NCBI RefSeq assembly: GCF_030144855.1
Contig: NC_082716.1
Location: 25,606,001-25,670,000 of the forward strand
Direction: 5' to 3'
DNA from: Hypanus sabinus
Taxonomy: Eukaryota
Length of the DNA: 64,000 bases
The notes below the pieces were generated by a model that saw only the letters and a program-made list of their open reading frames with translations, had not been told where the DNA came from and ran no database searches. Of this stretch, positions 9,306 to 61,241 are shown in pieces. The translations under genes and the position numbers were made by a program. Numbering within the stretch: position 1 is the stretch's first letter; every line of letters begins with the position of its first letter.

Positions 9306-9408
9306 TCTATTCTACTGGGAACCTCACAACCTTCCAGGCTACAACAGGTAATTTTGATTTCTTTCTATGTATCTGAACTGTTCATTTCATCATTAAATCA
9401 TCCATCAA

Positions 9409-9970
9409 CACTTAGTAGCCACTTTATTAGGTGTGTTCTGTACCTAATGAAGTGGCCATTGAGCTTACAGTCGGGTCTCCTTATCCATGGGGGATTGGTT
9501 CTGGGACCCCCTGTGGATACCAAAAAATACGGTTGCTCAAGTCCCTTACATAAATGGCGTAGTATTTGCATATAACCTACGCACAACTTATAATAACTAA
9601 TACAATCCAAATACTATGTGAATAGTTATTATACTGTATTGTTTAGGGAATAATGACAAGAAAAAAAGTCTGTACACGAGACGCGAGGCGAACAATGCTC
9701 AAACAACGAGTGCTGGAGAGAGGACATCCGGGTTTTCATGATCTGCATGCAGAGCCCACGGATAAGGAGGGCCGACTGTATATTCATAGTATTTCGCTGC
9801 TCTAGCCTTCAAGGTTTGACATGTTGTGCACTCAGAGATGCTCTTCTGCACACCTCTGTTGTACGCATGATTATTTGAGTTACTGTCACCTTCCTGTCAG
9901 CTTGAATCAGCCTGACCATTCTCGTCTGACCTCTCTCACTAACAGGCTTTTCCCCACAGAACTACCACTA
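9409..9970 (-). mobile_element. Truncated Tc1-like non-autonomous element (host of the MITE at 9468-9778)
   Basis: Palindromic TIR pair cacttagtagccactttattagg / tacctaatgaagtggccattgag (9409-9463); 9781-9970 aligns with the element at 44336-45161. Confidence 0.7.
9468..9778. mobile_element. Tigger/pogo MITE, MER2-like (311 bp)
   Basis: 24-bp TIRs (cagtcgggtctccttatccatggg / cccacggataaggagggccgactg, 3 mismatches); TA duplicated at 9466-9467 and 9779-9780; interior resembles the MER2 consensus as remembered. Confidence 0.85.
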
Positions 9971-9974
9971 TGTG

Positions 9975-11700
9975 TACAAAGGTGCAATAAAAAAATTACT
10001 TGCTGCAGGAAAACATAAATTTTACAAGATTAAAACACAAAGAGGGCAAAAACAAGTCCATTGTTGAAGAAAATGGTCAAAGTAGTCATGATGCTGGTAC
10101 ACTGGGGTGGTGAATAGGGTTGTGCAGATTGGTTCAAGAACCATATCATTGAAGGCAAGAAACTGGTTTTGAAACTCATGATATAGGACTTTAGGCTTCT
10201 GTATCTTCTACCCAATGATAGCTGTCATAAATTGGCATGGCCCAGATGGTGATTATCTGTGATGACAGATGCTTCATTCCTGAGGCTGTGCTTCCTATAA
10301 TATTACTGATGGCAGGCAGGGATGTACCTGTGATGTTTTCAGGCTGAGTCCACTACTCTCTGCAGTCTCTTGCATTTTTGCACATTTGAGTTATCATACC
10401 AGATCACTCGAGTCAGAATCATTATCGCTGTCAGTTGATTTGAAACTTGTTGTTTTGAGGGATCGGTAAAATGTAAGTCATAATGATCCACAAATTATAA
10501 AAGTAAATACACAGTGCAAAGAAAGGAATAATGAGGCAGTGCTCATGAATTCGTGGACCATTCAGAAATCTGTTGTCAGAAGGGAAGTGTGGGTCTTCAG
10601 GGTCCTGTATCTCTTCCTCGATGGTAATAAAAAGCAGATGGTATATCCCAAAAGGGAGGGTCCTTATTGATGGATGCCACCTTCATGAGGCACATGCTTT
10701 TGAAGACGTCCTCGGTGGTAGGGAGGGTTGTGCCTGCAGTACAGCTGGCTGAGTCAGCAACCCTCTGCAGCCTCTTGTCACCCTGTATGATTGAGACCCC
10801 ATGCCTGCCATGGGGACCCCAATGCACAGATTAACCAGTCAGAAAGTACTTCACCATTTATCGATAGAAATTCAAAGTACAAAGTAAATTTATTATCGAA
10901 GTACATGTACATCTCTGCATACATCCCAGAGATTCATTTTCTTGTGAGCATTCGCTGTAAATACAACAAACACAATAGAATCAGTGCACTCAACAGGATG
11001 GACAAACAACCAATGTACAAAAGACAGCAAGGTATGCAAAACAAAAAGAGAGAAAAAAAGAAATAATAATAATGAATAGGCAATAAACTTTGAGAACATG
11101 AAATGAAGAGTCTTTGGAGGTGAGTCTATAGGTTGTGGGAACAGTTCAATGATGGGGCAAGTGAAGTTGAGTGCCCTCTGGTTAAAGAGCCAGATGGTTG
11201 AGGGGTAATAAATGTTCCTGAACCTGGTGGTGTGGGTCTTCTGGCTCCTGTACCTACTTCCTGATGGCAACATCGAGAAGAGAGCATGGCCTGGATGGCA
11301 GGGGTCCTTGATGATGGATGCTTCTTTCCATTTGCAGTGCTCTATGTAGATGTGCTCTCTGGTGGGGAGGGCTTTACCTGAGGTTGACTGGACTGTGTCC
11401 ACTACCTTTTGTACACTTTTCTGTTCAAGGGCATTAGGGTTTCCATACCAGACTGTGATGCAACCATGATGTAAATTTGCTAGAGTCTTTGGTGGCATAC
11501 CAAATATCAAATTACTAACCAAGCAAAGACCCTAGCTTGCCTCTTTCGTGATTGCATCAATGTATGTCCAGGGATGATCCTCTGAGATGCTGGCACACAG
11601 GAACTTAAAGCTGCTCATCCTTGAACACTCAGTGAGGGCCAGTGTGTGTTCTCCAGACTTCCCTTTCTTTATATCAACAGCCAGCTCTTTAGTCTTATGA
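9975..11700 (-). mobile_element. Cluster of three Rex1/Babar-like 3' fragments
   Basis: Repeated CITVWYGN, HPGHALFSMLPSGSRYRS, TTRFRNIYYP and FKFL.ASISED motifs; separate 3' ends near 9975, 10410 and 10870. Confidence 0.8.
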
Positions 11701-23454: not shown

Positions 23455-24700
23455 TTCAAAGTAGAAAGAAAATCTTTTTCTGTGCACATACTTAGCAAAT
23501 TTATAGAGCAGTAACTGTAAACTGTAAACATCAGGAGCTATAAGCTGTAAACAAACTGTGCAAATGAAGATATAAAGAAATAGCAATAAATAATGAGCAT
23601 GAAATAAAAATACACCAGAGTCCTTAAATGAGTGTAGTTATCCCCTTTTGAACCTGGTGGTGTGAGTCCTGAGGCACCTGCACCTTCTATCTGATGGCAG
23701 CAGTGAGAAAAGAGCATGGCCTGGGTGGTGAGGATCTTTGATGATGGATGCTGCCCAGCAATTTAAAGTTACTGACCCTCTCCAACTCTCATCCTCCAAT
23801 GACTACTGGCTTATGGACCTCTAGTTTACCTCTACTGAAGCCTACAAGCCTTTTCTTGGTCTTATTAAAATTGAGTGAGAGGTTGTTGTTATTACACCAC
23901 TCAGTCAAACTTCCAATCTCTTTCCTGCATGCTGATTCATCGCCCCTTTTGATACAGCCCACAACGGTGGTGTCGTCAGCAAACTTGTAAATGGAATTGG
24001 AGCTGTACTTTGCCACACAGTCATAGGGGTAAAGCAGGTAGAGCGGAGAGCTAAGTCCACATCCCTGCAGTAGTCCTTTGCTGATGGAGTTTGTGGAGGA
24101 GATGTTTTTGCCAATCTGAACTGTCTGGGGTCTGCAAGTGAGGAAATCCAGGATCCAATTGCACAAGGGGGTAGCGAGGCCCAGGTCTTTGAGTTTATTG
24201 ATTAGTTTTGAGGGGATGATGGTGTTAAATGTCAAGCTGTAATCAATAAAGTACATCCAGATGTAAGTATCTTTGCTCTCCAGATGTTCCAGGGCTGTGA
24301 GAAGAGCCAACGAGATACCACTTACTTTAGACCTATTGCTTCAGTAGGCAAACTGGAACAGGTCCAAGTTGCCATTCAGACAGGATTTATATGCTTCAGC
24401 ACTAGCCACTCAAAATACTTAATCACTGTGGATGTAAGTGCCACTGGGTGATCGTCATTTAGACAGGTTATCACACTCTTCTTGGGCGATTGAAGTAGGT
24501 GGGTACCACACACTGCTGGAGCAAAAGGTTGAAGATATCCTACACATCATCTTCAGATACTGAGACCAAAGGGTCACAGGGAGATATGGGGGTGCACAAT
24601 GGTTCCTCCTTCTTCTGTCCCTATGCCCATTTTTATATCAGCCACAAACCCGGCCACAAAGCTATCAATTACATCATTCAAGTCATGTACCTTCTGTGCT
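23455..24700 (-). mobile_element. Rex1/Babar-like LINE (RT core)
   Basis: [53 protein letters not shown]. Confidence 0.9.
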
Positions 24701-32479: not shown

Positions 32480-34519
32480 AAATTCACCAACTCCCACGGC
32501 CCCAGGTGGTCCTATGATTTTAGTCTTGGAGGTCTACATGTGAGAAGACTTCAGGAGTGTGAACCCATGAAAAGTATTCAGCACAGGTGCAGTAGCTGGC
32601 TAAGTACTAAAGACCCATGTTGATCACTGAGATCTTTAACCTCTCGTTAAGGCAGCCTGACATACCTACCTACTTCAAGCAGACTTTACTTATATTGGTG
32701 CCTAAGTCATTAAAGACCCCTCACACCCTCTCCATAAACTGTTTGTTCTTCTACCATCAGGTAAATGTTACAGGAGCATCAAAACTAAAACCACAAGGCT
32801 ACTAAACAGCTTCCTCCCACAGGCAGTCAGACTGCTAAATAGCTGCTCTACCTGATTCTGCTTTGGACACTTTTAACTTGCACTGGACATTTGTAACTTG
32901 TTTTTAACTGACATGTGGTGGTTGTGTTTTACTATTTATTGTTGTGTTTATTATTTAGTGTTGCATTTGTTATGTTATGATTGCACTGCGCCTTGGAAAC
33001 GCTGTCTCATTCTGCCCTGCAGAGCTGATGTACGGTTAGAATGACAATAAAGTTTTTGAGTCTTGAATCTTGAATATGGTAACCTGCCTCAGTGGCTATT
33101 ATTCAACATAGTTTACATCAACAGTGATCAAGTGTCTTGAGAGGTTGGTGATGAAACATATCAACTCCGGGCTGAGAAGCTTCTTGGATTTGCTCCAATT
33201 TGCCTATCAGAGCAACAGGTCCACATTGGATGCCATCTCATTGGCTCTTCACGCAACCCTGGAAAATCTGGACAACAAAAATGCATACATCAGAATGATC
33301 TTCATCAATTACAGGTTGGCATATAATACAATCATCCCCTCAAAACTAATCATTAAGCTTCAAGACCTTGGCCTCCGTGCCTCCTTGTGCAATTGGATTC
33401 TCGATTTCCTCTCTTGCGGACCCCAGTCAGCTTGGATTGGCAACAATATCTCCTCCACAATCTTCCTCAGGACAGGTGTACCATAAGGCTGTCTGCTCAG
33501 CCCCCTGTTCTACTGCTTTACACTTATGGCGGTTCAGCTAAGTACAGGTCCACCTGCCATATTCAAGTTTGCTGATGATACCACTGTCATAGGCTGAAAC
33601 AAGGGTGGTGATGAATCAGCATATAGGAGGGAGATAGAAAATCTGGTTGAACGGTGCCATAGAAACAACCTCTTGCTCAATGTCAGCAAGACCAAGCAGC
33701 TGATCATTGATTTCAGTAAGAGGAAACCAGAGGTCCAAGAGCCAGTCCTCATCAGAGGATCAGAGGAGGAGAGGGTCAGCATCTTTAAGATCTTTGGTGT
33801 TCATTTCAGAGGATCTATCCTGGGTCCAGCACATAAGTGCAATTATAAAGAAAGCACAGCAGCTGCTCTACTTCCTTAAGAGTTTGTGAAGATTCAGCAT
33901 GACATCTAAAACTTTGACAATCTTCTATAGATGTGTGGTGAAAAGTATATGGACTGTCTGGTATGGAATCTCCAATGCCCTGGAATGGAAAAACCCGCAA
34001 AAAATCATGGATGCCACACAGTCCATCATGGGTAAAGCACATCTCCATGAAGTATTGTCACAGGGAAGCAGCATCCATCATCAGGGACCCCCACCACCCA
34101 GTTCATGCTCTCTTCTCACCGCTGTAGTCAGGAGAAGGTACAGGAACCTCAGCACTCACACCACCAGGTTCAGGGACAGTTATTACGCCTCAACCATCAG
34201 GCTCTTGAAGCAAAGGTGATAAATGCATTCAGCTCTCTTGCCTCATCATTGAAATGTTCTCATAGCCTATCAATTCACTTTCAAGGACTTTTCATCTTAT
34301 GTTTTCGATACTTATTGCTTACTTTCTGTACTTGCACAGCTTATTGTCTTTTCCACACTGGTTGAATGCCCAAATTGGTATGGTTTTTCAATGATGTTAT
34401 TATGGATATTATTTTATTATGGGTTTATTGAGTATCCCTGATAGAAAATGAATCTTGGGGTTCTATATGGAGATATATGCTGTATATACTTTGATAATAC
34501 ATTTTCTTTGAACTTTGAT
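32480..34519 (+). mobile_element. Rex1/Babar-like LINE inserted antisense into another Rex1
   Basis: [70 protein letters not shown]; tail tttgaactttga. Confidence 0.9.
32706..33076 (+). mobile_element. Third Rex1-like 3' fragment, nested in 32480-34519
   Basis: IKDPSHP..LFVLLPSG..LLNSFLPQAVRLLN; distinct 3' UTR ending gacaataaag and (tcttga)n. Confidence 0.8.
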
Positions 34520-43544: not shown

Positions 43545-44216
43545 AACAACCCTGCACTCAACATCAGTAATACCAAAGGACAGATTGTGGACTTCTGAAA
43601 TGGTAAGATGAGGGAACACACATCAGTCCTCATAGAGGGATCAGAAGTGGAGAGTGTGAGCAACTTCGAGTTCCTGGGTGTTAGTATCTCTGAGCAACTG
43701 TCCTGGTCCCAACATATCGATGCAGCGAGAAAGAAAGCAAGACAGGAGCTACATTTCATTAGGAATTTGAAAAGGGTTGATGTGTCACCTAACACACTCA
43801 CAAATTTCTACAGATTCATCGTGGAGAGCAATCTGACTGGCTGCATCACAATCTGGTATGGGGGTGGGGGGAACGCTACTGCACAGGATCAATGTAAGTG
43901 GCAGAGAGCTGCCAGCTTCATCTTGGGCACTAGATTCCATAATCTCCAAGGTACCTTCAAGGCAGCATCCGTTATTAATGACCTTCACCACCCAGGACCC
44001 GCCCTCTCATTTGTAACTATCAGGAAGGAGGTCCCTCACTACCTCTTTTTTTTTTATTTCTGTTTTGCCCTACTTATTTAACTATTTCATATATACACCA
44101 TACTATATATATATTATAAAATTCAGTTTTTTCTTTGTGTATTGTATTGTGCTGTTGCCGCAAAGTTAACAAATTTCACGACATATGCTGGTGACATTAA
44201 ACCTAATTTTGATTCT
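43545..44216 (+). mobile_element. Rex1/Babar-like LINE 3' fragment
   Basis: FEFLGVSISEQLSWSQHID, LTNFYRFIVESNLTGCITIWYG; terminal gacattaaacct...gattctg. Confidence 0.9.
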
Positions 44217-44335: not shown

Positions 44336-45161
44336 CTCAGTGGTTATTTTAGTAGGTATAGAGGAAACTATTAAAGTGGCCGCTGAGTGTATGTTTGTGG
44401 TCTTCTGCTGCTGTAGCCAATCCAATTCAAGGTTCAACATATTGTGCACATTATCAGGGAGAGAGTGAGCCTATGGCATGTGGAATTGTCCGGTGAACTA
44501 TTCGTTTTTGTTGTACTGCAAATCATGGTCTATACTGGTGGCCTTGTTATTGCATGGGTGGAGAGTGCTGATGCTTTTTTGCAGAAGTGGGTGGGGGGGT
44601 TGGTCGTTGCTTTGCTGCTGTTTGTGTGTGGGGGGGGCTCTGGGTTTCTAACGTATTAACTGTCACTCATTCTTTGGGGCATTCTGTTTTCATGGATATC
44701 TGTGAAGAAAAAGATGTCATGATGTATATTGTGTGCATTTTTCTGATATTAAATGAAACTATTGTGTTCACTTGAGTTACTATTGCCTTCCTGCTAACTT
44801 GAAACAATCTGACCATTCTCCTCTGACCTCTGTCAATAGCAATGAATTTCGCCTGCAGAACTACTGCTCAATGAATGTTTTTTTTTGTTTTTCACAATGT
44901 TCTCTGTAAACTCTAGAGTGTTACACGTGAAAACTCCCAGAAGGCCAGCAGTTTCTGAGAAACTCAAACCACCCTGTCTGGTGCCAACAGTCATAGTCAC
45001 TAAGATCACATTTCTTCCCCAGGCTGATGTTTGATCTGAACAACAAATGAACCTCTGGATCATGTTTGCATGCTGTTATGCATTGTGTTGCTGACACATG
45101 ATTGGCTAATTAGATATTTGCAATAATGAGCAGGTGTACCTAATTAAGTGGCCACTAAGTA
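44336..45161 (-). mobile_element. Tc1-like deletion derivative (transposase N-terminus remnant) with a LINE 3' UTR insertion at about 44450-44765
   Basis: TIRs ctcagtggttattttagtaggta / tacctaattaagtggccactaag; minus VGTRQGGLSFSETAGLLG resembles the Tc1 paired-like HTH; extra inverted TIR copy near 44365-44390. Confidence 0.75.
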
Positions 45162-46013
45162 TATATTCCTCTCTCTGAGGAAATTGACAACCTGGGTAAA
45201 TCTTCTTATCACTTTTATATTGTTGACAAAGATATAATAATCGATAATATAAGCAATTAGTTGGTCTGACATTCCTCCATTCATTACTTGAACAGATAAG
45301 CTATATAAAATGAACAGGTAAACTCAATTAAACTAATAGTCATAGGAACGTAATGTGAAATGTAGAAATTGGATGAATTGCATATCTTAGCAGAAAACCT
45401 TTAGGTTATAACCAAAGTTAATTACTACTTTAAATCTTTTGAAAGTATTTGAACATATGTGAGTGGTTGAACAAGCAAGTTAATAATTATATTAGCATTT
45501 CTCCTGATGTTTTACTTTCTTTGTTTGTAAATAAAATATGCCTTTACAGCAATTTTGTTTTATTACCACATGCTTGCTCCAGAAAAAGCAAGTGAAAATG
45601 CAAAATGGAAAAAGTACTGCAGTTTAAACCACTATTTTAATTTGGGTCTGAATGAGGCAGGAAATGAACTCAGTTGTGTGAGGGAGATTTTAGTTATTGG
45701 ACCATCTCAGAACAGATAGTCACAAGTGACCAGTAAGTAGGAATGCCTGTTCTGTTTGGATTTATCTCTGGCCTTATAAATCGATTGACCTTTTCTTATT
45801 GTTCCATCTACCCAAGAAAGTCCTCAGCATACCTCCTCCCACCAGAGAATCACAGGAATTTGAAGGGCAGTAGGAAACCACCACCAGAGAATCCCAATTT
45901 CCAGCCCGTCAAATTCAAACTTTTTTAAACAACCGATGAATGCAATAATAAGCAGTGGTTAGTCATAAATGTTTTTTAATAGCATTTGAAGGGTGGCTTA
46001 AAATAGTCATTAG

Positions 46014-48113
46014 GATGAATAAACTCTTCTCGGAGTCCCAGCCTAGTACAGGTGTCAATTATAACTAACATTTGATAACAAACTCTGCCATCTTCTTCAG
46101 GGATGATACCTGGGCATGTTTAGTCCACTGGTATTTATACCCCCATAGTCTGTCCCTCCTGATTGATTAGTCCTCATCCAATCAGGTTTCTGCTGTCCTA
46201 CCTTGTTTACAATCAAATTCCAGTTCTTACTTAAAGTGAGACCTTCGTCTTTGTTAAAATTCTTTTCCTCTAATTTTATTTCAATGACTTTATTTACAAG
46301 GTGGCCCCAAAAGCCATTGGTGTGATACAGTAGTTTTGTGCTATCAAAGTCAATGCTCTGCTACCGCTGATTTCTCTGGGTAACCCAAACAGATGTACTG
46401 CCTGTGCTCCTTGATGCGGGTTTCCATCGTGCATCCTGTCTGGCTGATATACACTGCTCCACCTTCACAGGGAATCCTATCAACACCAGACGACCTAAGT
46501 CCCAGGTCATCTTTGACCTCCGTAAGCTGTGATTTGAGCTTCCTTATGGGTTCGTGGATGGTGTTAATCCAATCTTTCTTCAGAATCCTGGTGATCCTTC
46601 CAGAAGTCTTGGGAATATGAGGAAGACTCTATTGTCAGTGGGATAGATGCCTCACTAAGCATTTAATGGCCATCCTGTGTTGGGGGCTATAAGCATCATA
46701 TCATGATTTCAATCAACTTCATTAAAACCATAACCAACATCCAGCTGAATCCAGAGGACATAATCAGCAGTTTCAACATAGTGACCCTGGTCAGGAGAAT
46801 TCCCATTAATGACAACTTTGTCCTCCTGTAGTCAAGGTTTGACAAGGGTGCCATTGATCTCTTTGAAAACCCCGTTACGTCGACATACTTCCTTTATAAG
46901 GGGAACTACTATAAGCAAACAGATGGATTGGCCGTGGGATTGCACTTGTCACCAGCTATAGCTAATCTCTACATGGTGGACTTTGAGGAGAGGGCCCTGA
47001 ATTCCTTGCCCTTACACCCCAAATACTTCTTCAGATATGTTGATGACACTTTCGTAGTGTGACCTCATGGAGTCCAGGCACCAACAGTTATACAACCACC
47101 TGAACAGCGGACATCCAAACATTTACAGTGGACTTGGAGAAAAATAATTGCTTCCTGTTCCTGGATATTTTAATATGATAGAATCTAGATGGTAGCCTTG
47201 GATATGGCATCTATTGGAAACCCACTCACACGGATTTGTACTTCAACAATAACAGCCACCATTATGCCTCCCAATGTAGAGAAGTTCTTTTTACTTTAAC
47301 TGCGCAAAAACTACCTTGGATCCAGAGAGTCTCCCTGAGGAAACAAGATGGTTATACATGATGTTCCTACAAAATAGCCACTAGGTGAAGAAAATCAATC
47401 AGGACCTTAAAGGAAAACCAGGAAACCTAACAATGAGGAGGAACCCGTTGCTACCACCTGTCTTCCTTATATTCCCGTGGTTTCTGGGAGGATCACAAGG
47501 ATCCTCAAGAAATAACCGATTAATACCATCTACAAACCTGTAAGGAAGCTCAAGTCACAGCTTATGTGGGTCAAAGATGACCTGGGACTCAGGTCGGCTG
47601 GATTCCCTGTGAATATGGAGCAGATGATATTAGCCAGGTGGGACACATGGTGGAAACCCACGTCATGGAGCATAGGAGGTGCATCCATTTGGGTTACCCA
47701 GAGAAATCGGTGGTAGCTGATCACTGCATTTGCAATGGTCATAGATTGACTTCGATGGCACAAAAGTACTGTGCCACACCAATGGCTTTTGGGACTGCCT
47801 GGTCAAGAGAGCCATTGAAATAAAGCTAGAGGAAAAGAACTGTAATAAAGATGAAGGTCTCACCCTAAGTAAGAACTGTAATTCGATTGTAAACAAAGTG
47901 GGAGAGTGGAAACCTGATTAGATGAAGACTAACCAAACAGGACAGATAGATTACAGGTGGTATAAATACCACCAGACTAGACAGGCCCAAGCATCACCTC
48001 TGAAGAAGGTGGCAGAGTGTGTCATTGAAATGTCAGTTACAATCGATACCTGTACCCAGCTAGAAGCCCGAGAAGAGTTTATTCATCATGTACGCCGAGA
48101 AAGCACTAGATCC
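46014..48113 (+). mobile_element. Penelope-like element (Poseidon/Penelope type), 5'-truncated, with inverted pseudo-LTR
   Basis: Plus RT motifs IVSGID, ISSFNIVTL, YFLYKGNYYKQTDGLAVG..LSPAIANLYM, FFRYVDDTFV, FLDIL, KPTHTDLY; GIY-YIG part IPCE.., EHRRCI..SVVADH, EAIEIK-like, NKDEG. 46014-46620 is the reverse complement of about 47480-48087. Confidence 0.9.
47996..48037 (+). ncRNA. Hammerhead motif in the Penelope pLTR (mirror copy near 46062-46103, minus)
   Basis: CTGAAGA a ggtggca gagtg tgtcatt GAAA tGTC: core plus a 7-bp stem II including G-U pairs. Confidence 0.6.
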
Positions 48114-58552: not shown

Positions 58553-61241
58553 CAGTGGTCAGCACCCTTTACCACTGAAAGAGCCATTTGGACCCGTTTC
58601 CCACAGAAAAGAAAACACTGGGAGCCACAAAACCCGTTTGACACTTAAAATGAAATAACACTGCATACAATGCTTTTTTTGCCTTTATGCTATGTATAAA
58701 CAAACTATAATGTGTTGCATTTATGAAATCGATGGACTCCTGCAGAGAAAACGAAATTACATTTCTGCATGCAACAAAAACATTTTGAACTCCGAAAAAA
58801 AGACGTTGGGTTGAAGGTTACTTTTAAGTAAAATACTCAAAGTCGATTTGAGTCCTTCTTGTATTTATGAAAAACGCCAAACTTAAATTGTCCGCCAGCA
58901 GCAAACCAAAAATAACGTCAGCCATCTGTCAACCTGAAAAATAAAAGGACTATTTCACTGAACAATGAAAAATATGAATATACGTAAAATAATAGGCAAT
59001 TAAAATATTTATCATACTTGGTTAATGGGATTTCTGCTCCTGGACCTCAGCGCACAGTGTCTGCACATTAGGGCTGTATGACGTCACCTTCATCTTTACA
59101 CAGGATCGCAAGCTGTCACCTGTGAGGCGTGCGCGATGTTTGTTTTTAATAAAGTTCATGTTGGAGACCACCTGCTCACATACATATGTGGATCCAAAGA
59201 TCGACAGGACTCCAAGCGCATACTTTTTAATGTTTACATAAGTGTCGGGGATAGCATTCCATGTTTCGAACACAAGTTTGTCCGATTTGAGGAGGTTTTC
59301 AATATCACTCCATTTGTGATTCTGAGCAAGAATGGACTTCTGACGGGCAACATCTTCAAGGTCTGCTGTCAAGCGTCTAAACTTGGTCACCCATATGTCT
59401 TTGTCGGCTAAGTCGGCCAGTTCCATCTCAAGATCAGATTGAATCACACCTGCCAATGCAGTCGTATTCAGTAGGGATGGATCGATGCTTCGGGGAGTGA
59501 CCGGGAAGGATAATGTGTTTTTTTCCTCTCTGAACTCACAGAAGTGTTTCCCAAATGATGCTTGTATTGCAATGATTGCAGAATGTAGTACTCTGAATTT
59601 ATCATGTCGTGAGTTTGTTTGAACTCTCTCAAATTGGGGAAGTGAGACAATGTGCCTTTCTGTAAATCTCTGGCAAGCACTGTCAACTTGCGCTCAAATG
59701 CCAAAACCTCCTCCAACATGTGCAGGGCTGTGCGTCCTTTCCCCTGAAGAGCTGTGTTCAGCGTGTTCATGTGCGCTGTCATGTCTACCATGAAGTGTAG
59801 CTTTTCCAGCCACTCTGGTTGTTCCAGCTCAGGAAAGGTGAGCCCTTTGCTGCCCAGGAAAGTTTTCACTTCTTCCAGACACACGACAAAGCGTTTCAGC
59901 ACCTCCCCTCTGGACAGCCACCGGACTTTGTTGTGCAGCAGGAGATCAGAATATGCGCTTTTCAGCTCGTCCAGTAACAAACGGAATTGACGGTGATTTA
60001 AACTTTTTGCCATTATTTTATTGACAATCTAAATGACAACATCCATTACTTCTGTGCATTCCGGAGGAAATGTTTGAGCACACAGTGCATCTTGGTGCAA
60101 GATGCAGTGAACAGTCAGCAGCTTTCTGTCCAGCGACTTCTGCAGTAAAGCCACAAATCCCTTGTGCGCTCCTGTCATACTTGGTGCCCCATCAGTAGCT
60201 ACTGACACCAGGTGGGTGTCCTTTATTCCTTTGGCTCTTAAACAATTCAAGACAGCCTCACAGATGTCCTCCCCCCGTGTTTGGCCTTTTAGAGTTATCA
60301 CCTCAATCATTTCTTCCTGTGGCCAGGCAGAGTTTACATACCGGCAGAACAGCGCTATTTGTTCAATATTACCTTTGTCTTTAGACTCGTCACAGGCAAT
60401 CGAGTAGGCCACAGCTGAATTGATGTCTTTAGTTTGCTGTCTTGTGATGTCTTCTGCCATTTTTATGGTTCTGTCTTTGACAGTCTTTGCAGAGAGGGGC
60501 ATATCCCTGATTTTCTGCACAATTTCACTCTTGTTTTTAAAGTCCGTGAATAGATGTTCTGAAATCTTAATGAAAGATTCTTTTATATATTCACCATCTG
60601 AAAACAGCTTCCCGTGCCTGACTATTTCCTGAGCGGCAACAAAACTAGCATATGTAGTTGATTTTCCAGGTTTCATCCACTTCTTGAAATGATTTTTGCT
60701 CAGATCAACCTTCCGCATCAGTTCCGAAACGACTGTTTTTTCTCCTCATCTCCATCCGGATATTTTTGAGCAAAGGCTGCGTGTTTATTCTGGAAATGTC
60801 TTGCGACTTTTGACTTTTTGTTGTTTGCTAGTTTCTCATTGCATATTAAGCATACCGGTAAACCAGTCTCGTCAGCAGTGAAAGCAAATGAATCTGCCCA
60901 CGTATCATTAAACGTTCTGTTTTCTTCATTCACTTTTCTTTTATTAGAATTCTCCATAATTAGCCTACCTTGGATTGAAAAATTAAAGAGATCACGCACT
61001 GGCGGGTGTCAGGCATTGGCAGTGGTGACGTATATTAATAGCGACAAAAAACACATTTTATTTGGATTGTACAAGATCACCATAATCTTCAAATATAGAA
61101 TTACATTTCAAAAACTAACAAACTAACATAAAATATATTTTAATTAAATACTTAACATTTATTTTCCAAAGCCACAGGGAGCCGCAGCACAGAGATGAAA
61201 GAGGCGCATGCGGCTCTGGAGCCGCGGGTTGCCGACCCCTG
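58553..61241 (-). mobile_element. Full-length hAT DNA transposon, Charlie/Buster subfamily (2689 bp)
   Basis: Imperfect TIRs cagtggtcagcaccc / gggttgccgacccctg; 8-bp flanks ccctaaag (58545-58552) and ctctagaa (61242-61249, NTCTAGAN-type target); subterminal palindrome gaggcgcatgcggctc; host CR1 rejoins across it. Confidence 0.95.
59022..60957 (-). pseudogene. hAT transposase (GTF2IRD2/EPM2AIP1/SPIN-like), about 640 aa reconstructed
   Basis: MENSNKRKV start; BED-like CLIC..RHFQNKH; catalytic DES, TDGA and CEQ; HCILHQ; VRWLSRG; FGSTY. Frameshifts near 60740 and 59587; in-frame TAG at 60029-60031. Confidence 0.93.

Follow-up and report, generated by a model that had tools for sequence, protein, structure and literature searches.

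A TA-flanked pogo/Tigger-type MITE in the stingray Hypanus sabinus that resembles human repeat DNA, and the probable horizontal origin of its family

An element of 311 bp in the genome of the stingray Hypanus sabinus was identified as an inert non-autonomous cut-and-paste MITE, flanked by TA and bounded by 24-nt terminal inverted repeats (TIRs), and this anatomy was confirmed. The reading that best accounts for the element, and which is considered probable as a whole, is that this pogo/Tigger MITE belongs to the MER2/Tigger2 family and that the family spread horizontally to rays and to the ancestors of placental mammals. MER2/Tigger2 is a classic DNA-transposon fossil family of placental mammals, and we know of no source of it outside mammals. 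The window analysed was a stretch of 64,000 nucleotides (assembly GCF_030144855.1, contig NC_082716.1, positions 25,606,001 to 25,670,000 of the forward strand), and all coordinates given below are those of the window. The features of the locus are as follows.

9404..9465: hairpin-like terminus of the older repeat that received the MITE (paralogue at 44367-45168)
9466..9467: left TA target-site duplication (one TA only in the paralogous empty site)
9468..9778, + strand: whole non-autonomous element (MITE), 311 bp, without coding capacity
9468..9491, + strand: left 24-nt TIR, starting CAGTCGG, matching the right TIR at 21 of 24 positions
9535..9676, + strand: interior with the three strings of the earlier note, at 9535-9548, 9552-9585 and 9630-9676
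9677..9754, + strand: right interior, GC- and CpG-rich by composition count
9755..9778, - strand: right 24-nt TIR, the element ending CCGACTG
9779..9780: right TA target-site duplication
about 44367..44449, + strand: paralogous empty site, where another copy of the repeat runs through one TA without interruption

An earlier note on this DNA, made from the letters alone, had described a non-coding MITE of 311 bp with TA on both sides and 24-nt TIRs, strikingly similar to mammalian MER2. The structural part of this description held in full, as did its reading as a pogo/Tigger-type element. The repeat search recovered the terminal arms at 9466-9491 and 9755-9780 (26 nt including the TA), which were 88% complementary. 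When the element ends were compared without gaps, 21 of the first 24 nt matched, and no similarity was found past 24 nt. The TIRs begin with CAG, as is required of Tc1/mariner-pogo MITEs. For a TA-flanked inverted pair matching at 21/24 positions, with a spacing of at most 1 kb in a 64-kb window, the chance expectation was approximately 5e-5, and a chance origin of the pair was rejected on this basis. No open reading frame (ORF) of at least 110 aa overlapped 9468-9778, the Rfam scan gave no match on the element, and no second copy of it was detected by BLAST within the 64-kb window (n=1). The transposase behind the element was probably of the pogo/Tigger type.

The insertion was examined with a sequence in which the left flank, up to and including its TA, was joined directly to the right flank from after the second TA, and which was then compared with the window. 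The joined flanks aligned across the junction to approximately 44367-44449, with 71% identity over 82 columns (E=3e-8), and only a single TA was present there. With its one TA, this paralogous empty site establishes that 9468-9778 was inserted by cut and paste and that the TA was duplicated in the process. The repeat that received the MITE (9404-10000; second copy at 44367-45168) is a non-autonomous element of about 0.8 kb with palindromic, hairpin-like ends. Its end at 9404-9470 gave a weak mir-9256-like match, far under the gathering score.

Likeness to human DNA was assessed with an index of sequencing runs that works on exact 31-letter words. The 311-bp stretch, or some part of it (the index specifies neither the part nor the number of words), was found to occur mostly in human runs. 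As a random 31-mer has a probability of about 1e-9 of occurring in a 3-Gb genome, this assignment implies that human DNA does contain at least one exact 31-mer of the element, and the resemblance of the element to some human repeat is thereby indirectly confirmed. A 31-mer is longer than the 24-nt TIR and cannot fit within it, so that the likeness reaches past the inverted repeats; the earlier note had held that similarity confined to the TIRs would tell against its proposal, and this was not what was found. The three interior strings that it had matched to MER2 were all located in the element, with lengths of 14 nt (9535-9548), 34 nt (9552-9585) and 47 nt (9630-9676). If these strings do match MER2, the shared 31-mer or 31-mers would lie within 9535..9676, as no other matching runs would be of sufficient length. 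A full-text literature search with short strings of the element returned no paper printing them.

MER2 and MER2B are eutherian non-autonomous derivatives of Tigger2 (Tc1/mariner-pogo), and the human counterpart of the stingray element is presumably MER2. Over its left two thirds, the element is taken to be close to the MER2 consensus, with a single short deletion; the 34- and 47-nt strings presumably belong to the best-conserved part of MER2, whereas the right interior (9677-9754) is assumed to be unlike it. The element resembles MER2 and MER2B in its TA duplication, in TIRs of about 24 nt and in being a non-coding MITE of roughly 300 bp; it differs in its host, a stingray in the one case and placental mammals in the other. 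Tigger2 itself has been described with 24-bp TIRs and one transposase ORF (PMC8458439), and the stingray element shares both this TIR length and the TA target. Tigger2 is autonomous in eutherians/primates, whereas the stingray element is without a transposase gene. It is plausible that the element belongs to the same family as eutherian MER2/Tigger2, and a Tigger2-type transposase is presumed to have moved it.

The split between rays and mammals dates back more than 400 Myr. DNA transposons have been reported to evolve neutrally within genomes (PMC7070016). Given such neutral evolution, an exact non-coding identity of at least 31 nt across this span of time favours horizontal transfer over vertical descent. 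The best reading, and a fairly probable one, is therefore that a single Tigger2-type family was passed horizontally to both lineages, in line with the transfer proposed in the earlier note. The family might have entered the ray lineage and the placental ancestors directly from one to the other or via a common third source. A Tigger2-like transposase encoded elsewhere would have bound the 24-nt TIRs in trans, and the same transposase would have excised the element and pasted it into a TA within the older repeat, duplicating that TA. The same pattern of near-identical non-coding MITE sequence in distant vertebrates is known for SPIN, OC1 and other DNA transposons, although these are hAT elements that spread among tetrapods and are far younger.

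The evidence from the human runs proves that some part of the element is shared, and no more. The match to MER2, which the earlier note had called almost base for base, is presumptive and may be overstated, and the right third of the element, which is CpG-rich, differs strongly in composition. These points would suit a ray-specific pogo/Tigger MITE in which one short block is shared with a human repeat, be it MER2 or another, and for which no recent shared origin need be assumed; were the likeness limited to one such block, the element would be an ordinary ray MITE. This explanation is considered unlikely. It leaves an exact 31-mer common to the interior of a ray transposon and to human DNA still in need of explanation, the 34- and 47-nt strings were verified in the element, and the TIR length is the same as that of Tigger2 (PMC8458439).

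Vertical persistence would require a Tigger2-like lineage maintained since the jawed-vertebrate ancestor, with parts of the interior conserved because transposition requires them in cis. Conserved domains of SINEs, such as V (also present inside mammalian MER6), have been reported to be vertically inherited over metazoan time (PMC6887750), and the match to human runs would be explained if just part of the element were shared. However, constraint would have to be unusually strong for exact identity to persist over 31 nt or more when the summed divergence exceeds 800 Myr. Moreover, the activity of mammalian MER2/Tigger2 has been dated to about the time when the eutherian orders diverged, and not before, Tigger2 having arisen more than 100 Myr ago (PMC1914374; PMC3525145). 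The published chondrichthyan Tiggers also carry different TIRs (PMC9219625). Vertical persistence is thus regarded as quite improbable. An artefact, in which human DNA had contaminated the stingray assembly or been wrongly joined into it, would agree with the assignment of the stretch mostly to human runs, but is scarcely credible. The element has exact TIR boundaries and a TA duplication, it lies in a ray repeat of which the paralogue runs on without a break at the same TA, and its flanks are ordinary elasmobranch repeats with many copies in the window.

Transfers of pogo/Tigger elements between Eutheria and Chondrichthyes have been claimed before, by Diaby et al. (2022), who described such elements with TA duplications in shark and skate (PMC9219625). 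The chondrichthyan TIRs of that study start CAGTAAGTCC, CAGTAGCGCC and CAGTAAAACTC, and are unlike the CAGTCGG start of the stingray element. Its mammalian entries, in the rows compared, are of the Tigger1 type and none has a start like that of the stingray element, and no stingray is among its sampled species. As the TIRs differ and the mammalian entries in these rows are Tigger1-like, the study, judged by them, does not cover the family of the stingray element. In the literature search, no relative of MER2/Tigger2 was found to be reported in cartilaginous fish, nor was the family reported outside mammals.

The composition of the element differs from that of its surroundings. The element has a GC content of 0.44 and 12 CpGs, with a CpG observed/expected ratio of 0.81, and its last 101 bp reach a GC content of 0.56 and a ratio of 0.90. 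The corresponding CpG ratio was 0.17 in 10 kb of flanking sequence around the element and 0.22 in the whole window (GC content 0.41), the latter value being in keeping with a methylated vertebrate genome. The retention of CpGs in the element, compared with their depletion in the flanks, would indicate that it has spent much less time under methylation-driven decay, and the element looks younger than its surroundings, in line with late entry into a genome poor in CpG. It also suggests that the insertion is younger than the eutherian fossils of MER2 and MER2B. Alternatively, the element may have been very CpG-rich at the start. Three mismatches are present between the TIRs, one of which is a CpG-to-CpA change; these show that some decay has occurred, and the age of the element is uncertain.

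A close stingray relative of MER2/Tigger2 would add an old cross-class transfer to a record in which few such events involving mammals have been catalogued; 24 of 975 vertebrate horizontal transfer events involve mammals or birds (PMC7070016). With it as an outgroup the Tigger2 invasion could be dated, and it might be a route to an autonomous relative that is still living. It is possible, although rather doubtful, that a single Tigger2 lineage, spreading horizontally, has both the stingray family and eutherian MER2/Tigger2 as its branches, and that it was active outside mammals long after it had become extinct in them, as the CpGs retained in the ray copies would show. If this were true, stingrays, or an associated marine parasite or virus, might still hold an intact Tigger2-type transposase, and the element would be a pointer to the source of a major transposon invasion of placental mammals approximately 100 Myr ago.

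Among the 27 ORFs of at least 110 aa in the window, no pogo/Tigger transposase domain was found with Pfam; LINE reverse transcriptase and hAT fragments were recovered from the same set. Diverged interspersed repeats crowd the window, together with LINE reverse-transcriptase fragments, two of which (24038-24388 and 33163-33513; 351 nt) lie in inverted orientation with 75% identity. A decayed hAT transposase of the Buster type is present at 59022-60718 (- strand), in three consecutive ORFs with DUF4371 and hAT dimerisation domains. For one 229-aa piece of it, the best protein matches were two from Hypanus sabinus, at 91% and 88% identity, in support of a stingray host; teleost proteins (Knipowitschia, Umbra) matched it at 82-88% and a turtle protein at 78%. 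The identity to the teleost and turtle proteins makes this hAT element a candidate for horizontal transfer in its own right. Two arms of about 480 nt each (46146-46627 and 47460-47953) form an inverted repeat with 78-83% identity in three collinear blocks and about 830 nt between them, and could be either a foldback element or a transposon with long TIRs. Finally, a 157-aa ORF at 43608-44081 (+ strand) gave an ALKBH8_N-type domain match (E=3.5e-10), and the repeat sequence around it recurs at the start and at the end of the window.
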